In this document: in pieces, positions 1,421 through 64,000 of the stretch
Layout of the letters: each line of letters begins with the position of its first letter
Numbering within the stretch: the stretch's first letter is position 1
Source of the DNA: Epiperipatus broadwayi
Lineage: Eukaryota > Animalia > Onychophora
Direction: 5' to 3'
DNA: 64,000 nt
NCBI GenBank assembly: GCA_028023455.1
Contig: JAQFVV010000003.1
Span: 20,088,001 to 20,152,000 of the forward strand
Notes under the pieces: model-generated
Databases searched by the model: none
What the model was told of the DNA's origin: nothing
What the model saw: only the letters and a program-made list of their open reading frames with translations
Position numbers and translations under genes: made by a program

Positions 1421-3659
1421 ATAACTTATGTGAAATATATTATTTCTAGACCATGTGTATTATCCCTCATAAATATTTGATAAATTCCCAATGCTCACTC
1501 TGACAAAAATTTTTCAAAAACTGTCCATTTTTGTTATCCACATCATCAATTTTTTCAATATGCCTAGTTATATCCCCTATAACTATTATTTTCTTTCTTA
1601 TTTTGTACAGCAACTCCCTCTTTATTGTTTTTACATCTAAAATATTTTATTTTTATTATCTAATCTTTTAATAATAATCTTTATAAAAGCATCATTTAAA
1701 AATCTAAATCTCTATTTAAAATATGGTTAATATTATTGATTAGAGTAACTTCCTTAAATTTCCTTTCTCTTTTATTTTTAATATCTTATATCATTTTAGT
1801 ATTATCTTTACAAATACAGGTATACCCAAATACATGCCTTGTTTTCATGTAAATATACAGGTGTTGTTGTTTTTTAAAATTATATTTATGCTGTATTAAT
1901 TTTGTGTAAATTAAATTTTTTATTTCACCTATGTAATTTGTTTTAATATTTTTAATCTAACATTTTTACATTTAATGGCATAAATACCATTTATGCAATT
2001 ATCTGAATTTTTAATATAATTAATATGTTTATTATCTAATATATTATGTTTTTCCTTTTTTTATTAATTATTTTATTATAATTTATTCTATTATTTAATA
2101 TTTTATTTACAATTTTATTTAAATTATTTTAGGCACATAGTCTTAGGGTTATAGCCTTAATATATATTGCTTAAATTATTATTATAATTTTTCATATGTA
2201 TATAATTAGTTTTTTTTTCTATTTAAATTATTATTATTATTATTGTTGTTATAAAAAATATCTTCATTAATTTTGCTTACTGTCAATTTTATGCTTTTCT
2301 TAACAGTTTTACTTGGGTAATCATTATTTATAAGTTGTTATACTGTTAAATCTTTTTGTTTATTGTTGATCAATGCAGTAATTTATAGCTCTGCATACTA
2401 TTGAATTTATAGTAGTAATTTTATATTTTTAGTCTATATTAGAATACCAATTAGTTATATTATTGCCCATATTAGTTTTTATTATATATAGATATTTTTG
2501 TTTTACATCTATCTTTTATATAAGGTTTAATTAACATAATGTCTAAATATGTTAATTTATTACTTTTTAATTTTTTTTATTGCGAACTTATAATATTAAT
2601 TTTATAGTTTTTATCTATATTTGAATTTCTTAATCTTATAGAAAAGGTAAATGCAAAATAGAAACATCTATATATAATAAAGTAATATTAACATTATTAT
2701 AACTAATTAGTATTTTAATATAGAGAAAAAATGTAAAATTAATACTGTAAGTTTAAGAATATACAGAACTATAAATTATTGTTCTGATATAAAGATGCTA
2801 ATAAATAAATAAATTTAATAATGGAAAAGCTTATAAATAATGATTATTCAATAAAAACTATTAAGAATAGCATAAAGTTGATAATAAGCAAAATTAAAAA
2901 GATAATAATAATAATTTAAATGGATAAATTAATTATATACGTATAAAAACTTATAATAATAATATAAACAAAAATAAATAAATTTATAATAAATTATAAT
3001 AAAGTAATTAATAAAAAAAAAGAAAATATATAATATGTTAGATAATAAATATACTAGCAACTATAATGAAAATTCAGATAATTATTTAAATGGTGAATAT
3101 AAAATTAAATGTAAAAATGTTAAATTAAAAATATTAAAACAAATTATGTTGGTGAAATAAAAAACTCAATTTATGCAAAATTAATACATCAATATAATTT
3201 TAAAAATCTCCTATATATTTACATTCAATAGAAATGAGATATGTATTTAAAAAGATAGCATTAAAATGATGCAATATACTAATAATAAAAGAAAAAGGGA
3301 AATTAAGGAAGCTATTGTAATCAATAACGTTAAATCCATTTTAAATAAAGATTTATATTTTAAAATGATACTTTTATAAAGATTATTGATATAAGATTAA
3401 ATAATAAAAATAAAAAGAAGAAATGTTTTAGCTGTAAAAGATACTAAAAGAAGGAGTTGCTATACAAAATAAGGTAAACGGTGCTACTGTTTGGGAGTTT
3501 GCTAGGTATGGAAGAGTATGTTTGCCTGGAGCTAGAATTAGGGAAGCTACAGATAAGATAAATAAAGAGGGGAGTAGAGATGTTTATGGTTTGGTGATGA
3601 CAAATAATTTGTTAGAGCCCTAGTTTGAAAAAGGTTAAAGGAAAAATAGGAGTAGTTGG

Positions 3660-3850
3660 ATTACTATCAAGATTCAATAATAGATATATGTTAGATAGGG
3701 CATGTTCTTTAAATGAGAGATTGAAAAAATTATGTGACAGAAATAATGTTATGTTTGTGGATGTGTGGAATTTTTTTTATTAGTAAGAGGGAGTTATACA
3801 GTAAAGATGGACTGCATTTAGCAAAATAAGGAAGTTAGGCATTAGGGGGT
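3660..3850 (+). pseudogene. LINE ORF1 SGNH-esterase remnant
   Basis: Translates DRACSLNERLKKLCDRNNVMFVDVWNFF and ELYSKDGLHL (DxxH block of SGNH esterases, as in esterase-type LINE ORF1). Confidence 0.75.
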
Positions 3851-3877
3851 TTGTTTTATGAAAAATATTATACTTTG

Positions 3878-4015
3878 GGAAATGTATAAAAGGGGGGGGG
3901 GGTAGGGTTTTAAATTATAGTATTTTCAAAAAGAAGGTTAAGAGTAGGAAATGTATGAATGGGGGGGGGGTAGGGTTTTGAATTACAGTATTTTCAAAAA
4001 GAAGGTTAAGAGTAG
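3878..4015. repeat. 2 x 69-bp tandem duplication containing G10-11 runs
   Basis: Units start at 3878 and 3947, between LINE ORF1 and ORF2. Confidence 0.92.
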
Positions 4016-6798
4016 AATAGATCAGATGTAAGAAGAAAACAAAGGGTAGCTGATCCAAATATAAATGTAGATGTGGAGAGGGAATGGGTCTGTAAAACTA
4101 ATGATAAACTAATTACAAATGTAATAGAGAAGAAAGAGTCAAAATTTATAAAAAGGTAGTATGAAATGAAGAAATTGTTAAAATTGGATATTTGAATATG
4201 CCAAGTGGTAGGAGACCAGAAAAGTGGTTGGAATTAAACAAAGCAGTTAAAAATGAAGAAATTGAGGTATTAACAGTAGTGGAAACACATCTAAGAGAAG
4301 ATGAAGAACCTGCATTGGAAAATTTGGTATGGTAGGATATAAACAAAAAAGAAAAAAGTGGTGGTGGTATAGGAATTATGTCAAAAAAATATTTAAATAC
4401 TATAAAGTATCAAGAATATTTGTGGTTTCAGATAAAGATAGGAAGACAAAAATGTTTGGTGGATATAGTGTATGGCACTCGAGATAGTCAAACTATAATA
4501 AAATGGAACAGTAGCATATATGAATGCTTATTTAAGGATATACAGAGTTTCAAAAAAGGAGGGGAAGAAAATAATGGTTATAGGGGATATGACTCGGCAT
4601 ATTGAAGAAATAGGATAACAAGAATGGACAGCTTTGGAAAAAAAATTGTTAGGGAGTGAATTTAGAAATTTATCAACTATTTATGAAGGACAATACACAT
4701 GATCTAGAAATGATATATTTTACACAATAGATTATGTATTAATAGATAAAGAGGAAATGAATAAAGTACAGAAAATTAAAATGTTTGATAATATAGAGAG
4801 AATATGTAATAATGATCATAAATTTTTTTATAATAGAAGTGGTTAGTAATATGATAAAAAAATAATAATAAATATACAAAGAATAGTGAAAGATGTGGAT
4901 GAAGAATAAATGATAAGAATAAGTTAGAAGAATATAAAATGAAAGTAGAAGAAATTATGCAAGAATTTGTTGGGGGTGAATATAAGAAATGGTGTGGTGA
5001 AGTAGAAAAACTGGCAAATGGGGTTTTAGGGGAGAATATTTAGAAGAATAAACGTAGTTAGAAAAGTGAGAATGAGTAAAAGTGTAAAAGAGAGGGGAAA
5101 GGCATGCAGAGAATATAAATGTGCTATTAAAAACAAAGAAAGTGAAAAAGATGTGAATATTAAATGGGAAAACTATTTAATTAAAAAGAAGTTGGTTAAA
5201 ATAGATAATTATAGAGAGAGAATGAAATTAAATAGTAAATTATTAGAGGATATTAATAAAAATGAAAAAGATGGGAGTAATAAATTTTGGAAATATATTA
5301 AAAGAAGGAATGTAGGGGAGAGAAAAATAGTATTATTAAATGGTGAGGAGAAAAGGTGTAGCTCTAGAGAAGAATTAGAGACAATATTAAATTATGTAAT
5401 GGATATAGAAAAGATGTTAGATGTGAAGGACAGAATGATAACAAACATAAAAGCACATGGTAATGGAAATATTAGTTTTACAGAAGAATGAAATGAATGA
5501 GGCAAGGAAGAAGTTAAAATGTGGAAAGGCAAGAGGTTTACATTGATGGACAGCAGAGATGATGAATTTGGGAATAGGATAAAATTAAATCTATTGTCAT
5601 GTTTTAATAAGATGGCACAGAAGACAGAATTTCCAACTAGCTGGAATAATACAAGAGTGAGGTTATTATATAAAGGAAGGGTAAGGACCATAGAAAGATA
5701 AATGAATATAGACAAGTAGCAGTAATATTGGTGTTGTGAAAGATTTTGTGTATATGGTGACTGGAAAGGTGGCAAAATGGATGGCAGAAAATAATATAGT
5801 GGGAGAAATGCAAGAAGGTTTTAGAATGGAAAGACATATAGGAGATAGTTTATATGTAGTCTCACAATATAATAGATATGAATAGGAATACTGGTAGGCA
5901 AATTATATATAGTCTTGATGGATATAGAGAAGGCATATGATAGAGTAAATAGAAATAGATTATGGGTAAATTTAGTAAATTTGGGAATGAATGGAGCTTT
6001 AGTGGATCTTATCAGATTGCATAAAAATAATTATTATATGTATCAGTTAGAAAATATAGAATCAGAATTAAAAATGGGCTGGGACAGGGCAAGGATGCCC
6101 TATCCACCTCTTTGTTTTTGTTGTATTTGAGAGAAATGGAGAAGGCAATAGAAAGATTAGGAAGAGAGGTAGAGATACCATTAATAGATGACAAAGGAGG
6201 GTATACATTATTAGGTCTTATTTGCTGATGATATTTTCTTGTCCACAGAAAGTAGGGAAGATATGAAAATTGTGCTGAAGACTTGCTCAAGGGTGGATGG
6301 GTAAAGAGATAGGGATCAAATTTAATGAAGAAAAATCAAAATGATAAATGTTGGGGTAAGAGAAGAGAAAGAATTTTTCTTGGGGATATAAAGTTAAATG
6401 TGTTGAATAAGTATAACTATTTGGGAATCGTCTTAAGTAATCAGAGGAATTGTTTGGATGAATGGGAGGAAAAATTGATAAATGAAGCAAAGAAAAGAAA
6501 GGGACTGATAAAAGAAATTAACAGTGTTCTCATATAATAAATATGATGTAGTACGGATTGTATGGAAGGAACTGGCAGTAGCATAGTTAACTATGGTAAC
6601 AATGTGTTAATAAAGAGGAGTTAGATTACTTAGCAAAAGTGCAAAGAGAAGTAGAAAGGCATCACATGATCACCATCTCTTATACTAGCACATAACTGTT
6701 TATAAACAAGGCAAAACTCTCCATACAGTAGTGCCAATCAGAGTAATCAGTGGATGCCAGAAGGCTTGAGCATAAAATCCCTATCTAATGCCTACTCA

Positions 6799-6855
6799 TC
6801 CAATATCCGCAGACTAGTTTCTGGCTTATGGCCTTCATTGGTGAGGAGCTTTGGA
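6799..6855 (-). ncRNA. Degenerate HHR (core CCAAUGA)
   Basis: Family HHR layout; stem II GGC/GCC; GAAAC UA GUC retained; core mutated. Confidence 0.7.
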
Positions 6856-6924
6856 TCTGAGAGCACTGCATCTAGATCTGGATGGTTGCATTAGATCCTA
6901 AGATCTAGGTGCAGTGCTCTCAGA

Positions 6925-6981
6925 TCCAAAACTCCTCACTGACTAAGGCCACAAGCCAGAAACTAGTCTGGGGATATTGGA
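6925..6981 (+). ncRNA. Degenerate HHR (core CUGACUA)
   Basis: tcctca CTGACTA aggccacaagcca GAAAC ta GTC tgggga; G8 mutated. Confidence 0.75.
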
Positions 6982-7959
6982 TGAGTAGGCATTAGATAGG
7001 GATTTTATGCACAAGCCTTCTGGCATCCATTGATTACTCTGATTAGCACAGGGTGTTACTACAGTATGGAGAGTTTTGCCTTGTTTAGAAGTAGAAAATA
7101 GCATGTGTTAGATGCAGATGTGTGGCTGGTAAAGGAGGTAATTCAAGGAGAAATGGGATGGTTAAGTTTTTATATGAGAGATGCAAAATAAAATTGTTGG
7201 GTAGATTGCAATTTATGGATAGTAAGAGAATAACCAAAATAGTATTCAATTGATTATAAGTAAAGGACAGGCAACAAAATGGATGAAAAAGGTAGTGCGG
7301 TATGCAGAAGATTTGGATAAAGACTTAATGTCATTATACTTGTACAAAAGATGGGATGATTGTGTTAGGAGCATTGTATACTAGCAAAAAATAGGATAGA
7401 AGAATACATGCATTAATAAAAAAAAAATAGGGAGTTAGAGAGATGGAGAACTAGTATGGTGAATAAAAAAGAGTATAAATATATATATAGAAGTAAACAG
7501 AATATTTTATGGTTAATTTATGATAATAGCAGGGAAAGTAGTTTACTGTTTAAAGCTCAAACAGGGTTTTTGGCAACAAGGGAATATACAAAGGGATGGA
7601 AAATATTAGTCACCTGCTAATTAAATGTAAATGCTTACAAGTAGAAAGAGTACAAATAATGAAGTTGTGGAAGAATAAATATAAAACAAAGTGACTATAC
7701 AGAAGGTGGGTTCTTGGTTTTTATGCTGAGTTTGGAAAAAAGATAAGGGGGAATCTAGATAAAAAGGCTATAGAGTGGACAAAGATAATGTGGAAATGAG
7801 ATAGAGAAGAATATGGGGAAAACTTAGGGGGCAAGAATGGAAAAGGAAAGTAAGGTGGCTAACAGTTTTTTTTAGCATATTGGCTAAGAGATTCCTGATT
7901 TTGATAAAGGAGTAGCCATATCACATCACATGTAACAATTAAAATTTAAAAGATTATTC

Positions 7960-9270
7960 AGTTATAGGAGATAGAGATACTGTTAATAGGTGGCAAGGGA
8001 GTATATACTTTGTCAAGTCTTTCTTGCAGAAAAAAAAGAGATGTGGAAGCTATGCTAAGGACATGCACAAGGGTGGGTAAAGAGAGGATCAAATTTAGTG
8101 AGGACAGAATACTGGGGAAAGAGAAGACAAAGAATTTTTACTGGGGGATATAAAGTTAAGTATGGTGAATAGATATAGTTATTTGGGAATCATCTTAAAT
8201 AATCAGAAAAATTGCTTGGATGATTAGGAGAAAAATTGATAAATGAAGCAAAGAAAGGAATTGGTAAAGAAATTTAACTGTGTTTTCATATAATAAATAT
8301 GATATAGCTAGAATTGTATGGAAGGTAGTGGCAGTAGTAGGATTAACATATGGCAATGATGTGTTTGTAAAAGGGTATTATATTACAAAGGGAAGTAGGA
8401 AGATTATGCATTAGATGCAGATGTGTGGATAGCAAAGGAGGCAATTCAAGGAGAATTGAATTGGACCTGTCAAATTTTTATATGAGAGATGAAAAAAGCA
8501 AAATGAAATTGTTCAGTAGATTGCAGTTTATGGATAATAAAAGAATAACCAAAATAGTATTTAATTGGGTTATGGGTAAAGGGCAGGCAACAAGATGGGT
8601 GAGAAAGGTAATATGGTATGCAGAAGATTTGGATAAAGAATTTATATCAATATACTTGTATAAAAGGTAGGAGGATTGTTGAGTGTTATAGTGGTAAGGA
8701 ATGGGATAGAAGAATAGATGCATTAATAAAGAATAGGGAGTTGGAGAACTAATATGGAGAGTAAAAAGAGTTTAAATATATATAGAAATAAACGGAACAT
8801 TGGATGCAAGTTAATTTATGATAATAGCAAGGAAAGTAGTTTACTGTTTAAGGTTCAAACAGGATCTTTAGCAAATAGGGAATATACACGTAAGTGGAAA
8901 ATTTTGTATAATTTAGTCTGCAAGGTGTGTAAGGAAGACATAGAAAATATTAGTCATCTGTTAATTCAGTGTAAATGCTCGAAAGCAGAAAAGATACAAA
9001 TAATGAAGTTATTGAAGAATAAATATAAACAAATTGATTATATAGAAAGTGGGTTATTGGTTTTTATACTGGGTTTGGGAAAAGAAGGGGGATTTAGATA
9101 TGAAGGCCATGGAGTTGACAAAGATTATGTTATGGAAATGGGAGCAGATTCTGGGAAAACCTAGAGTGAGGAATGGAAAGGGAAGATAAAGTGATTAACA
9201 GGTTTCTCTGAACATAGTTGCTGATAGATTCCTGTCTTCGTATAAGAAGTCACAGTGCATCACAGTTAAA
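7960..9270 (+). mobile_element. 5'-truncated second copy of the same LINE family (RT C-terminus, CCHC finger, 3' UTR)
   Basis: Homologous to 6170-7940. 8754-9164 contains LLFKVQTGSL and CKVCKEDIENISHLLIQC. It is uninterrupted where the first copy carries the 6658-7086 insertion. Confidence 0.88.
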
Positions 9271-11289: not shown

Positions 11290-12260
11290 TTTTTTTTACC
11301 AGCTCTGTGCTACTTAATATATGCTTCAGTAAATAATAGATTCTAGCTGATAGTCCTTAATAAATCCCTATCCTGTGCCATTCTGTTTTTTATCAGTGAT
11401 GATTTTGGATTTTGAAACAATGCAACTGGTCTTTTAGGATCTAATGCTCCTTCCTCCTGTTAGCCATAATTTACCTCTGTTATACTATCAAGCTATGAAC
11501 CCAAACTGAAAATATAAAATGTTCTCAATCTTAGCCAGTTTGCTTGCATAGTCATATAGATTTGAAATCAATTCAGTTTCTATATATTATGATGTCCTTA
11601 GATTTTTTAACCATTCTAGACATCTCTGTCATATGATCAGGATTAAGTATAGATTATTAAATTACCACATGACACCTGGCAGCATATATTTTTCTTTCAT
11701 TAGCTCTATGGCACTTAATATAGCTCTAGTAAATAATAGATACTAGTGATTAATAAATTCCTATCTTGTATTATCCAATCCAATATCCTAGACAAATTTC
11801 AAGGTTATGGGTTTTATCAGTGAGGAGTTTTGGTTTTTAGAACAGTGCATCTGGATGTATTTATACTAAGTCCTGGCCACAGTATAGAGATGCCTATAGT
11901 AACTAAGAACACATCTTTACAATTATACAAGCAAGTTGATTGAGATTGATAACACTCACGTTTTCAGTTTATGCTGATAGCTTGGTAAGTATAACAAACA
12001 ACAACAAAAAAAAAAAAACACCAGAAGGAGAGTGCATTTAATTCTAAAGATGCAGGTGCACTGTTTCAAAATCCAAAACTTCACTGATTAAAGATATAAG
12101 CTTGAAATTAGTCTGGGGATATTGGACAGAACAATGCAGGTTAGGGATTTACTAAGCACTATCATCTGGCATCTATTACTTACTAAAGCTTACAGTAAGT
12201 GGCATAGAATAGGTTAAAGAAAAAGATATGCTGGTAAAACAGCAAGATATAAATTGGAAT
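11290..12260. mobile_element. Divergent subfamily of the retrozyme-like element, tandem + foldback
   Basis: HHR remnants at 11779-11833 (-, core CUGAUAA), a partial core at 11390-11396 (-) giving a 424-nt period, and 12072-12126 (+, core CUGAUUA). Boundaries approximate. Confidence 0.75.
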
Positions 12261-21200: not shown

Positions 21201-22058
21201 TATTTTAATGGTTTAACATGCAATATTCTATAATATCTACCTCAATTGTATCATTTTATAAGATTGTTTTATTAGTCAGGGGTTTTATCATGTAAAGTGA
21301 ATATATGAATATAAGGGGTTACCTGTATTTCATATTCTATATATTTTGCTAAGTAAATCCCAAAATGTTGTGTCTTTATATTTTATGGATTTTGCCTCTG
21401 GGAATAAGCATATTAATAGATTGCTAGATGAAAAAATAGCGTCTTTACTATATATACAAAGAATTGCCAGGTTGCTTAAATAACTAGTAAAAATGAAAAC
21501 AAAAATTTTGTTCTTCACACACTTTGGAAACAAATATACAATACTTTCATTTCATTTTTATATTCACTATTTGATTCATTTCAAAACTTTACAACTCACC
21601 CCTCTTATGTGGACAATGTTTTGAAGATTTGATATAAATTTATTTCATAAATTTATAAGGACAATGTTGATTGATCATGCAAGATTATTTGGGAAAAAAT
21701 AGCAATTATATGTAACTTGCTTTGTGCATTAATGTCCTATGATGAATAAGCTTTATTAAATCAAAACCATTAGATTGAGTATTTAAACTTTAAAATCAAA
21801 TCTTATTGTATTACTATTATTTAAATAAGAATGAAATTGCAATATTGTTTGTGAAAATTGTCAGACTCCCAATGGTACTCCAAACTATATATTCTACAGA
21901 GACTGGTTTGGCTTTTTCATCATATAGTGACTGATAGGATAAAATAATATAGACAATGCTTTGAAGATTTGATATTGCTTCAGTTTATTTCAAATATATA
22001 TTTTGATTTACAAGTGTCAAAGTTTCTGCACTCACAATTTTAACATTAACACTTATTA

Positions 22059-22640
22059 AACCAATAAACATCAGATGATCACCATTTCTTATGCTTGCTC
22101 ATAACTGTTATTAAAACAGGTAAAACTCTCCATACAGTAGTACCACTTAATGCAAGCCATAATAATCAATGGATGCCAGAAAATCCCTATCTAGTGCCTA
22201 CTCATCGAATATCCCCAGACTAGTTTCTAGCTTGTGGCTTTTGTCAGTGAGGAGCCTTGTTTCTGAGAGCACTGCACCTAGATCTTAGCATCTAATGCAA
22301 CCCTCCAGCAGCCATCTTTTATCTCTATTTAACTACAAAACTATGAGAAAATTGAAAACACTATTTTCAATCTAAGCGTATTAGATTATGTAGTCATAGT
22401 TTTGTAGTTAAGTAGAGATATAATGTGGCTGCTGGAGGATTGCATTAGATCCTAAGATCTAGGTGCAGTGCTTTCAGATCCAAGGTTCCTTATTGACGAA
22501 AGCCACAAACTAGAAACTAGTCTGGGGTTATTGGATGAGTAAGCACTAGCTAGGGATTTCATGTTCAAGCCTTCTGGCATCCATTGATTACTCTGTCCTG
22601 CACTGAGTGGCACTACTGTATGGAGAGTTTTGTCTGTTTT
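22059..22640. mobile_element. Retrozyme-family foldback, 14-bp TSD
   Basis: TSD attaacacttatta at 22045-22058 and 22641-22654. Long inverted arms. HHR copies at 22205-22261 (-, core CUGACAA) and 22479-22535 (+, core UUGACGA). Confidence 0.92.
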
Positions 22641-24159
22641 ATTAACACTTATTACTAATCAATTACTAAACTAAAGATTATCCTTGCTAAGATATAAACT
22701 TTAAATCTTAATTAATGATTAATATATGTTTTTTTTTTATAATTTAACTTTATCTTTCTTTTTGCATGTTAATATATTTTTTAAAAGATATATGGAGCAA
22801 ATGATCAAGTCTTATATAAGAGATTGTAATTTGAGCCAACTGAAGGGACTGTTCACAATATTCATCCCGGGGATTTGTCTTTATTCATTATATTTTCAAG
22901 AATGTGTTGTGGAGTGTAAGTTTGAAATATGTATTATTTGTTAAATATATTGAATAATAAAATTTGAAAACAAAATAGTGAAAGAAGTGAGGGGTGATTT
23001 AAAAAAGGAAAAGAAATTCACTCATTTAGTGGAAATTTTTTAAATGTAATATAACTTAAATATCATTATTTCAAAACCCACAGATTTCAAATATTTTAAA
23101 ATTTTCAGGTTTAGTAAAAATATACACAAATATTACAATTTCTATAATGTATTTAATTACAAAAAAAAAATGAATTGTTGAAAAAAATATGTATTGATTC
23201 TCAATTATTTTTAAAATATTTTCAATTTTATTCTAATTATTTATTCTTAAAGAAACATCCACATAAAAGCAATGATGTGAATCATTTAGTATCTTTTTAG
23301 TTTTGCACCCATCACTATGATATAGCAGTATTTATGAATGGAATATAATTTACATAGAAAAATTCATTTGTAAAAAAAGTTGAAACTTTAAAAAATCATG
23401 CCAGTTTGTTCATTTTTGATTTTTAAGAGTGAATGAAATATAACAGCAAAAGATTTGCAATTCTATGCTAAACATTTATCCTCAAAATATTAATAGAAAA
23501 ACAATGATAGTGAATCATCTAATATCCAATTCCATTTATGATTGCATATATCCCAAAGATCATAATTAGTGAAAAGCACAAAAAAAATTTTTTAAATTTT
23601 CTGCAAGCAATTTTCATTATCATACTTTCTACTATAAATGCAATCTAAATTTTCTTCATAATGAAATAAATATAAGTAATTAAATTTCTTTAAATATTTT
23701 TTTAAATTCTTTTTAAGTAATATTTGCTAATAAATTATAATAACAAATTTAATTCTGTTCAACTTATTTTTCTTTAATGACAAGTATAGTAATGCTTTTT
23801 AAGAATTTTCTCTTTCTACGTGATAAGTGATATTCTTTAATTTCATTGAAAATTTTAATTTAAAAAAAAAAAAAACAACCTCAAAAACCAAGGTTTTGAA
23901 ATGATGGTATTTACATAACTTTTTATTTGTTATTGTTAGTACAGAATAAAGAAATCTAAAGAGTCTTATGATTTATTAATCTAATAAACTAATTATTTTA
24001 GTTAAGAAATTTGTCTCCAATTAAAATGCTTACTTAGAGTTTAAAAAACAAATTGTAAAAACATGGTTTACTTAAGTTATTAATCTTCATTAAAAAATTG
24101 ATTATCTTGAATACTTAAAAAAATAGAAGAAAACAGAACATCACTTGATTTAAATATTA

Positions 24160-61640: not shown

Positions 61641-62449
61641 AGTTGGCAATTGTGAATCAAATTCAGGTTTCATAAGATTAAGTTTTTCTATATATAGGCT
61701 TATATTATATATACACGCATTGGTAAAGGTCTGCATTTAAAATCAAATAAGGTCAATTTTATTTTAGTTTTAAAAAGATAAAGAAACTGATTTATTTTAA
61801 TTAAAAGTATTTCAAATAAATCTGTTGTAAAGCCTACAAGAACATAGGTTAATTAAACAATAATCTATAAAATTAGACTGTATTATTATTAATTAAAATT
61901 TCATGGAAAATAATTTCTTTTAAATTTTATTTCAAGTTTTGAAAATGTCAGTTAAATAATTTTAGGAATTAAGATGATTAAGTGACATGTATAAACGTAT
62001 CGGTATGTTTAATTGAAGAATTGTAAAAACACATAGGCTTGTTTAATTAAAGAATTTTGTAAACATGTGGGATTGTTAATTAAAAAAACAAATGTGTTTT
62101 GAAATGTGGATAAATATAAAAAGACCAGCTCAGAAAATAATTGTGCTTTTGAATCTTGATTTTGCCTGCTTAACATGAAGAATACTGAATCTCTATCAGC
62201 AACTGAATTAATAAATAAGCATTGCTACTTATCACAAATATTTCTTCAGCACGTAGCCCATAACCATCAGGATATTGAATGCTGCTTGCTAACAATGATC
62301 CAACACTGTTCCAACTATTTTCACACATGTAGTTAAACAGATATACTTCCCAACAATAATTTAATCCAATTGCGACTAAGAATGGAAACCTGTAAATGGA
62401 AAACTTTGCTAGTAAACTACCAAAGAGCTTTCTTTTCACTAATGTATGT

Positions 62450-62880
62450 ATATATATAAAATATTATTTTTGGGAATAAACCGTGTATTATTTTGTATTA
62501 CAATCCGATATTTCGATGGACTAGCAACTGCCATTATCAAGGTTAACTTTTGAAAAAAAAAATCATTAGATCTCAAACAATAACGTGACTCAGTGCGAGA
62601 TGAGATTCAACTTGAAGTAGTTCAGCATTCACAATATGAGACTTATCAAAATGTTTATTTCCCTCAGTTTTTTTCACCTATTAATTTTAAGTTAATATTA
62701 GATCAAATGAGAGGTTTCCACATAGTTGGAATACGTTGTGCTTCATCAACCCTATTTAAACCAGTAGGTCTCTTTAATATTTCAATTGACTCTCTCATGG
62801 TTCTTAAATCATATCTTTCCAAATTAGCAAGTATTTTTGTATTGTCAAAATCAGGTTTGTTATTTCTAAAAAATGGGAAG
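62450..62880 (-). mobile_element. Penelope-like element 3' remnant
   Basis: 62703-62864 minus reads NNKPDFDNTKILANLERYDLRTMRESIEILKRPTGLNRVDEAQRIPTMWKPLI*, a typical PLE endonuclease C-terminus. A degenerate HHR-like motif follows at 62503-62544. Confidence 0.8.
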
Positions 62881-63104
62881 TAAAAACTGATGTGCTAATT
62901 TTTTGATTAATATATATATATATATATGATTCTACTTTTATAGAGAAATACCTACTCAGCTGTATTACTTTTATAAACTTTTAAATTTTTATTATCAACA
63001 AACCAGTTATAAAAACAGGTAAACTTTTCATACAGTAACGCCATTCAGTGTAAGCCAGAGTAATCAATGGATGCCAGAAGGCTTGTGCATAAAGTGCCTA
63101 CTTA

Positions 63105-63161
63105 TCCAATATCCCCAGACTAGTTTCTAGCTTGTGGCTTTCATCAGTGAGGAGCCTTGGA
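63105..63161 (-). ncRNA. Type I hammerhead ribozyme, intact core
   Basis: Minus strand: UCCAA-GGC-UCCUCA CUGAUGA A-AGC-CACAA-GCU-A GAAAC UA GUC UGGGGA-UA-UUGGA. Stem I is bipartite, stem II is AGC/GCU, stem III is palindromic ACUAGU. Predicted cleavage between 63118 and 63117. Confidence 0.85.
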
Positions 63162-63557
63162 TCTGAGAGCACTGCACCTAGATCTTAGGATCTAATTCAA
63201 CCCTCTAGCAGCCACCTTTTATCTCTACTTAATGACAAAACTATGAGAATAAAATTGAAAACAGAATATTTTCAATCCAAGATCATTAGCTTATATAGTC
63301 ATATAGGTCTGAACTCAGTTCAGTACCCACATATCTTGGTGCCTTTGATTTTTTAATAACCATAGCCACCACTATCCTATTAGGCAGGATTGGTATTAAA
63401 ACACTAAACATCATATGATCACCATTTCATATGTTTTCTCATAACTGTTATTAAAACAGGCAAAACTCCCCATACAGTAGTGCCACTCAGTGCAAGTTAG
63501 AGTAATCAATGGATACCAGAAGACTTATGCATAAAATACCTATCTAGTGCCTACTCA

Positions 63558-63614
63558 TCCAATATCCCCAGACTAGTTTCTAGCTTGTGGCTTTCATCAG
63601 TGAGGAGCCTTGGA
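63558..63614 (-). ncRNA. Type I hammerhead ribozyme, intact core
   Basis: Same 57-nt sequence as 63105-63161. Predicted cleavage between 63571 and 63570. Confidence 0.85.
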
Positions 63615-63726
63615 TCTGAGAGCACTGTGCTTAGATATTAGGATCTAATGCAACCTTCCAGCACCCACCTTTTGTCTCTACTTAACTACAAAACTGAGAA
63701 TAAAATTGAAACCACGATATTTTCAA

Positions 63727-63775
63727 TCCAAGCTCACTGATGAAAGCCACAAAGCTATAAACTGGGGATATTGGA
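63727..63775 (+). ncRNA. Defective HHR copy (GAAA mutated, cleavage triplet deleted)
   Basis: ctca CTGATGA aagccacaaagcta TAAAC tggggatattgga; lacks tagtc. Confidence 0.75.
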
Positions 63776-64000
63776 TGAGTAGGCACTAGATAGGGATTTT
63801 ATGCACAAGCCTTCTAGCATCCATTGATTACTCTGGCTTGCACTGAGTGGCACTACTATACGGAAAGTTTTGCCTGTTTTAATAACAGTTATGAGCAAGC
63901 ATAAGAAATAGTGATCATGTGATATTTAGTGGTTTAAAACCAGTTATATTTATAATTTAGATGATTTTATGTATTTATCTTTTATAGTAACACATTTTAG

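Follow-up and report, generated by a model that had tools for sequence, protein, structure and literature searches.

A 925-bp insertion at 63012-63936 in a 64-kb stretch of the onychophoran Epiperipatus broadwayi genome (contig JAQFVV010000003.1; the whole stretch of 64,000 nucleotides that was analysed is hereafter called the window) is best explained as a single non-long terminal repeat (non-LTR) retrozyme, either a non-autonomous derivative or a passenger of Penelope-like elements (PLEs), and this reading is given a probability of about 0.78. The insertion, termed L6, holds two identical hammerhead ribozyme motifs that delimit a unit of 453 nucleotides. It is classed with the non-LTR retrozymes, and thereby as a non-autonomous PLE-type element, given its combination of retrozyme structural features, PLE insertion anatomy and lack of an open reading frame (ORF). 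Elements of the retrozyme type have been known since 2014-2020, and L6 is a good example rather than a new kind. An earlier note on the same DNA, prepared from the letters of the sequence, was right on the kind of element; it overstated the novelty and overlooked an inverted arm. The parts of L6 are given below, with unit positions (q1-q453) counted from the cleavage site.

63000-63011, no strand: left target-site duplication, 12 bp, AAACCAGTTATA; the identical 12-mer stands at 63937-63948.
63012-63117, minus strand: 3' end of the direct arm, formed by part A of unit 2 (q1 to ~q124-131), with an 11-nt deletion and no tail; 79% identical to 63452-63542.
63118-63147, minus strand: hammerhead 2 (CUGAUGA, AGC/GCU, GAAA, A-CUAG-U, C17); predicted cleavage between 63118 and 63117.
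63118-63570, minus strand: 453-nt monomer between the two cleavage sites; non-coding, 36.9% GC.
63148-63285, minus strand: part B of unit 2; contains an internal hairpin of 12 bp and, from the extended helix I, the 5' strand.
63571-63600, minus strand: hammerhead 1; predicted cleavage between 63571 and 63570.
63601-63736, minus strand: beginning of the direct arm, truncated at the 5' end (from q286, in part B) and placed by alignment of the dimer query.
63733-63942, plus strand: inverted arm with a degraded hammerhead, its outer end bearing the tail (q131-180); arms of 181 nt are 90% complementary.
63937-63948, no strand: right target-site duplication, matching 63000-63011.

The two ribozymes are identical 30-nt sequences on the minus strand (63600-63571 and 63147-63118), each of which spells CTGATGA-AAGCCACAAGCTA-GAAAC-TA-GTC. 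The pattern CTGATGA...GAAAC...GTC occurs at two sites in the window, where none is expected (100 dinucleotide shuffles), and a strict descriptor comprising the core, a helix II of at least 3 bp, a palindromic loop 3, UH and a helix I of at least 4 bp returned only the same two sites, with none in 30 shuffles. Every core nucleotide is kept (C3 U4 G5 A6 U7 G8 A9, G12 A13 A14, A15.1-U16.1 and C17). Read 5' to 3', each site has the 5' strand of helix I, a first core segment, helix II, a second core segment, helix III, the cleavage site and the 3' strand of helix I, and since the flanks form helix I these are type I hammerheads. Helix I is bipartite (UCCUCA/UGGGGA, an internal loop and AUCCAA/UUGGAU) and extends into a much longer imperfect helix. 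Helix II consists of three Watson-Crick pairs, AGC/GCU, with the loop CACAA, while helix III is one A-U pair capped by CUAG, and ACUAGU is therefore palindromic. Both L6 hammerheads equal the consensus of ten copies in the window. The pattern and descriptor searches bear out the earlier claim of two identical minus-strand type I hammerheads with a full core, a bipartite stem I, a stem II hairpin and a palindromic stem III, and the predicted cuts 3' of C17 delimit 63570-63118, which is the 453-nt unit previously proposed. A search of metagenomes with the ribozyme sequence gave no match.

L6 lies between perfect 12-bp target-site duplications, and the interval named in the earlier note is exactly the DNA between them. 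Its direct arm runs from q286 to q453, on to a second q453 and then to ~q131, giving 1.64 units and two ribozymes; by BLAST, the dimer query (q286-906) aligns to 63736-63118 at 97%. The inverted arm, which runs from q420 to q180, is 5'-truncated and joined head-to-head with the direct arm. The two tandem units described before are present as direct repeats, but the locus is no plain tandem, since the same insertion also contains a third, inverted and degraded copy, whose hammerhead has been damaged by the insertion of one A, the change of G12 to T and the deletion of TAGTC.

BLAST searches of the window with the monomer and the dimer as queries recovered six clear insertions (L1-L6), one 41-nt fragment and 11 hammerhead-like copies, of which two, both in L6, have an intact core. 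The number of hammerhead copies agrees with the earlier count; of the seven insertions reported with it, six are clear and the seventh is probably the fragment. The members of the family, with no strand assigned to whole loci, are as follows.

1259-1421: L1, 163 bp; two short part-A arms, no hammerhead, 9-bp flanking repeat ATAACTTAT.
6660-7087: L2, two arms with mutated cores and with GGC/GCC as helix II; clean duplication of 10-11 bp, (A)GAAGTAGAAA.
~11290-12260: L3, divergent subfamily with A10.1-U11.1; minus arm of more than one unit; borders approximate.
20427-~21218: L4, older, with 67-79% identity; plus arm of more than one unit (q61 through q453 into the tail).
22054-22661: L5, arms q268-q177 (minus) and q309-q139 (plus); 14-nt flanking direct repeat; both cores mutated.
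61903-61941: isolated fragment, 41 nt, 83% identical to q295-335 (internal hairpin of part B).
63000-63948: L6, the insertion including both 12-bp duplications.

The insertion anatomy is shared across the six loci. All of them have two opposite arms whose RNA-sense 3' ends face outward and fall within part A (q101-180), and the 5' ends of the arms meet mid-locus at a different unit position in each locus. At three of the six (L3, L4 and L6) an arm is longer than one unit and circularly permuted. Both outer ends could be mapped in five loci, and in each of these the arms stop at unequal positions (one at q119-131, its partner at q162-180), which leaves a one-sided tail of 43-58 nt extra at one outer end. 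Direct repeats abut the arms at four loci, with lengths of 12 bp at L6 (chance 0.005), 14 bp at L5 (chance 0.002), 11 bp at L2 (chance 0.013) and 9 bp at L1 (chance 0.08), where chance is the share of randomly drawn pairs of window positions that have a common word of that length or more. Inverted arms and flanking direct repeats at several loci would also be found in a foldback transposon or a miniature inverted-repeat type of DNA transposon whose terminal inverted repeats happen to hold a hammerhead-like sequence. However, a cut-and-paste transposase does not fit flanking repeats that vary from 9 to 14 bp, outer ends that differ by 43-58 nt, an inner junction that is placed differently in every locus and arms that can exceed one unit in circularly permuted form, and this explanation is barely credible.

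The same features are those of PLE insertions, which are highly 5'-truncated partial tandems, often with an adjacent inverted 5'-truncated copy and with just one of the two ends extended by a tail of 30-40 bp (Craig et al., 2021; PMC8557442). The family described here shares the partial tandem with an inverted 5'-truncated copy, the tail at one end and the variable duplications, and its tail of 43-58 nt compares with the published 30-40 bp. Furthermore, the hammerhead lies in the repeated part, as it does in PLEs and their pseudo-LTRs (pLTRs). Hammerheads in PLE repeats are frequently found as pairs 100-700 bp apart and on opposite strands, and the metazoan type I motif has a helix III of 1-2 bp with a palindromic loop and works as a dimer (Cervera and de la Pena, 2014; PMC4209133); the likeness of helix III and its palindromic loop implies a dimeric ribozyme here too. 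The ribozymes differ in helix II, which has 6-8 bp in minimal PLE hammerheads versus 3 bp here, and in helix I, which is long and bipartite here and closer to the canonical metazoan type I. The element also differs from PLEs in that it is without an ORF for reverse transcriptase (RT) or GIY-YIG endonuclease.

This last difference bears on an alternative that was already raised in the earlier note, in which the unit is the pLTR or 3' untranslated region of an autonomous coding PLE and the copies are heavily 5'-truncated insertions of it. The PLE-type anatomy of the insertions is in keeping with such an origin, as is the published observation that PLE insertions are highly 5'-truncated, with most PLE hammerheads single or on opposite strands (PMC8557442; PMC4209133). 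However, at three of the six loci part A is followed directly by the next part B, and the junction is free of coding sequence, whereas a truncated coding PLE would continue into its ORF. In addition, neither an ORF nor a Pfam match was found within or beside any of the six loci, none of which carries coding sequence. A truncated coding PLE is thus an improbable source of these copies.

The preferred reading, a non-LTR retrozyme, is supported by comparison with the published elements. Non-LTR retrozymes are non-coding tandem units of 150-450 bp with a type I hammerhead, without an LTR, a primer-binding site (PBS) or a polypurine tract (PPT), and they show a low GC content, duplications of more than 4 bp and self-paired RNA (Cervera and de la Pena, 2020; PMC7229834). 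The family in the window, described previously as retrozyme-like, fits this definition, being non-coding, dispersed and equipped with type I hammerheads; it is non-coding and without LTR, PBS and PPT, although PPT and PBS motifs had no explicit search. There are three respects in which it resembles the non-LTR retrozymes of Acropora, Mytilus and the axolotl (PMC7229834): (i) non-coding units stand head to tail with one type I hammerhead each, (ii) the GC content is below 50%, the duplications exceed 4 bp and, in the predicted fold, the monomer pairs with itself and is closed by helix I, and (iii) copy number is high and the sequences are heterogeneous. There are also differences. The 453-nt unit lies 3 nt above the published range, the insertions in the window are dispersed, twin-armed and 0.4-1.6 units long instead of forming long arrays, and an A·A mismatch separates core and helix II in the hammerhead, which no Rfam model recognises. 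A circular RNA, as formed by published retrozymes, is a prediction for the present family.

The absence of coding sequence was examined in several ways. No ORF of at least 55 aa with a start codon was found in 62884-64000, in agreement with the earlier statement that none lies between the hammerheads. An antisense frame of 66 codons (63440-63640 and the homologous parts of L2, L4 and L5) is open in the family consensus and was rejected as coding; it is stop-free in 5 of the 11 copies, as random substitution predicts (simulation, P = 0.52), while the other five frames have 4-7 stops. A tRNA-headed short interspersed nuclear element (SINE) was also considered and rejected, as ARAGORN finds no tRNA-like sequence in the window. 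The absence of a tRNA-like head separates the family from SINE-like repeats and satellites with hammerheads. Newt satellite 2, Schistosoma Sm-alpha and Dolichopoda pDo500 are similar in being short non-coding repeats with a type I hammerhead and a weak helix III that favours double-hammerhead cleavage; the family here differs from hammerhead satellites, compared by description only, in being dispersed with target-site duplications and inverted arms and not arranged in long arrays.

Constraint on the ribozyme was assessed by comparing the two units of L6 (u1 and u2), which differ at 1 of 80 hammerhead positions versus 46 of 217 alignment columns elsewhere (binomial P ~1e-7). The 46 columns correspond to ~35 events, and the tandem units differ by ~16% outside the hammerhead. 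Judged from this comparison, divergence of the units probably preceded their insertion, and the source lineage had conserved the ribozyme. The insertion had been called young, which holds for its consensus cores and perfect duplications and does not hold for tandem units that differ by ~16% outside the ribozyme. A unit difference of this size beside a conserved ribozyme speaks against simple rolling-circle copying of one circle as the origin of L6; it would fit a heterogeneous multimeric template, or template jumping between monomers.

Pairing in the proposed helices is retained across the family. In the ten window copies 91% of cells are paired, versus 27-40% with the partners slid, and compensatory changes are found at two pairs, in a sample that is small and in which the two arms of one locus are non-independent. 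Helix II covaries from A-U to G-C between subfamilies of these copies. The same change is seen in thousands of public contigs. In contigs from four runs with four organism labels the family abounds, with a summed depth of 1e4-1e5 on the element versus less than 2e3 on the flanks. Among the contig variants listed at 10% or more, the change from A-U to G-C at 10.2/11.2 of hammerhead 1 occurs at matched frequencies on the two strands of the helix (61/58, 64/56, 74/75 and 82/81% in the four runs), and the other frequent variant listed in the core region is U7 to C, position 7 being the one free core position. The contig variants support one compensatory event and not a full constraint map.

Folding of the 453-nt monomer gave -129.7 kcal/mol, with a z-score of -3.2 (100 shuffles). 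The first ~60 nt pair with the ~60 nt that precede the core, and in the predicted structure this pairing would keep both termini of the cleaved RNA next to each other for ligation. The predicted fold has branches and shows no clear rod, with the 5' and 3' regions paired.

Several observations weigh against the interpretation of L6 as a non-LTR retrozyme with a working ribozyme and PLE-type integration. The first group concerns the hammerhead itself. Positions 10.1-11.1 are a highly conserved G-C pair in canonical and PLE hammerheads (PMC4209133), and this pair is absent here. In the L6 copies positions 10.1/11.1 form an A·A mismatch and the next pair is A-U; in the majority variant of the family the pair after A·A is G-C, and the divergent L3 copies have A-U at 10.1/11.1. 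With A·A next to the core and only three Watson-Crick pairs in helix II, activity may be weak, and minimal PLE hammerheads were nearly inactive in vitro (PMC4209133). A search with the Rfam hammerhead models, which the earlier note had proposed as a check, returned no match at the gathering score in the window, nor at E up to 10 in a 1.2-kb segment and an 88-nt slice. The miss is likely due to the minimal helix III, the 3-bp helix II and the A·A at 10.1/11.1. The strong Rfam matches that did appear were plant miRNA precursor models, which were rejected as a response to the long inverted repeat with no genuine family match.

A further objection arises from the fold of the whole insert. A minus-strand transcript of the entire insertion folds at -474 kcal/mol with a z-score of -30, and in this fold a hairpin of ~200 bp arises by pairing of the inverted arm with both part A of unit 1 and the hammerhead 1 core, while hammerhead 2 keeps its local fold. 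Since the hairpin buries hammerhead 1, release of the 453-nt RNA would need a transcription start inside the insert or fast co-transcriptional folding. The earlier proposal that cleavage at both sites frees a monomer is sound as to the 453-nt spacing of the sites, and is complicated in a read-through transcript by pairing of the inverted arm with the upstream ribozyme. On this modelling, L6 may be a product of the RNA cycle and not a good source for it, and its ~200-bp hairpin would be a plausible source of small RNA.

The remaining objections concern integration and expression. The duplications at L5 and L6 overlap element sequence, and L3 and L4 are without a duplication. At L6, the 12-mer shares a few bases with each arm end (microhomology), and such an overlap of repeat and arm ends at L5 and L6 is expected if priming used microhomology. 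A Pfam search of the largest ORFs in the window, which was not exhaustively scanned in six frames, gave no match to RT_PLE or GIY-YIG, and as no PLE ORF was found in the window, the PLE that would drive the family is one that we infer. The public runs consist of undirected contigs that are RNA only by guess, and their total of ~100-200 Mb could equally be DNA; among the runs listed, none is labelled RNA-Seq. Contigs of such uncertain library type cannot separate RNA from DNA, or circles from tandems.

Some of these points would be explained if the unit were a satellite-like tandem repeat with a decaying or inactive hammerhead, spread by PLE machinery with no cleavage or circle involved. The failure to match Rfam, the A·A at 10.1/11.1 and the mutated cores in 9 of the 11 window copies are all in line with this, and hammerhead-lacking PLE clades proliferate well, so that hammerheads may "simply parasitize PLEs" (Craig et al., 2021; PMC8557442). 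However, an inert hammerhead does not account for a ribozyme region that is far better conserved between the tandem units than the remainder, for the compensatory change of helix II that separates subfamilies, or for a common core variant at the one free core position. Furthermore, retrozymes for which circles have been demonstrated have the same arrangement of unit boundary, helix I and monomer fold. An inert passenger repeat is accordingly judged an unlikely account of the family.

For a non-LTR retrozyme moved by PLEs, the following integration mechanism is proposed. The RT and GIY-YIG endonuclease of a PLE, supplied in trans, would make a staggered cut, and both exposed 3'-OH ends would prime cDNA on retrozyme RNA, within part A and aided by microhomology. 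The RNA copied would exceed one unit in length; candidates are a transcript of several units, a circle that is read around, or a series of monomers linked by template jumps. Head-to-head joining of the two cDNAs would follow. On the RNA side, by analogy with the published family, transcripts with two ribozymes would pair via the palindrome ACUAGU into a double hammerhead and be cut after GUC. The resulting 453-nt linear RNA, its ends held by the long helix I, would be circularised by a host tRNA ligase, again as in the published family. At L6, the upstream ribozyme would face competition from the inverted arm. A more specific and tentative version, which we regard as possible though doubtful, holds that L6-type insertions are the footprint of PLE-type two-sided priming on RNA of more than one unit with pre-diverged units (copied from heterogeneous multimers or by jumps between distinct monomers, and not from a single circle by rolling-circle copying), and that the A·A hammerhead is an active natural variant missed by covariance models.

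Retrozymes have recently been recognised as a source of abundant small circular RNAs in animals, and their copying back into DNA is still a matter of deduction. The variable duplications, two outward arms, one-sided tail and arms of more than one unit tie this retrozyme family to Penelope-type integration. The PLE link rests here on insertion anatomy; a 2026 preprint, in which non-LTR retrozymes are derived from PLE pLTRs, drew the same conclusion from vertebrate phylogeny. L6 could also serve as a natural test case for a hammerhead in which an unusual A·A step adjoins the core. The current picture is unchanged by these results, and their main value lies in a clean illustration of PLE-type retrozyme integration.

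Minor observations were made within the family and its surroundings. The L3 copy at 11290-11420 (minus strand) ends in GCTGGT followed by a run of 13 A, and L3 may represent an older subfamily with a different 3' end. One contig (run X11, depth 161) joins q29 to q393 (63178 / 63542); this junction, seen in a single contig and unverified, would give a mini-unit of ~90 nt with little beyond the hammerhead and the extended helix I. In the left flank of L6, summed contig depth in two public runs reaches 450-1700 at 62724-62885 versus 0-50 further out, and this segment is probably another repeat of lower copy number. A (TA)n microsatellite at 62915-62937 is ~65 bp away from the target-site duplication on the left; a preference for (TA)n targets is reported for some PLE clades (PMC8557442).

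Elsewhere in the window, a Pfam search of ten exon-like frames gave no match, and an Atlas search with one exon-like frame gave a weak ERp29 match only. Remnants of a retrotransposon resembling long interspersed nuclear elements occupy 3400-9200, and L2 sits within them. They include a frame with an RT-like motif at 5882-6127 (plus strand), an ORF at 8754-9164 that matches Pfam zf-RVT (E = 1.2e-6), and near-duplicate frames at 7095-7250 and 8371-8667.

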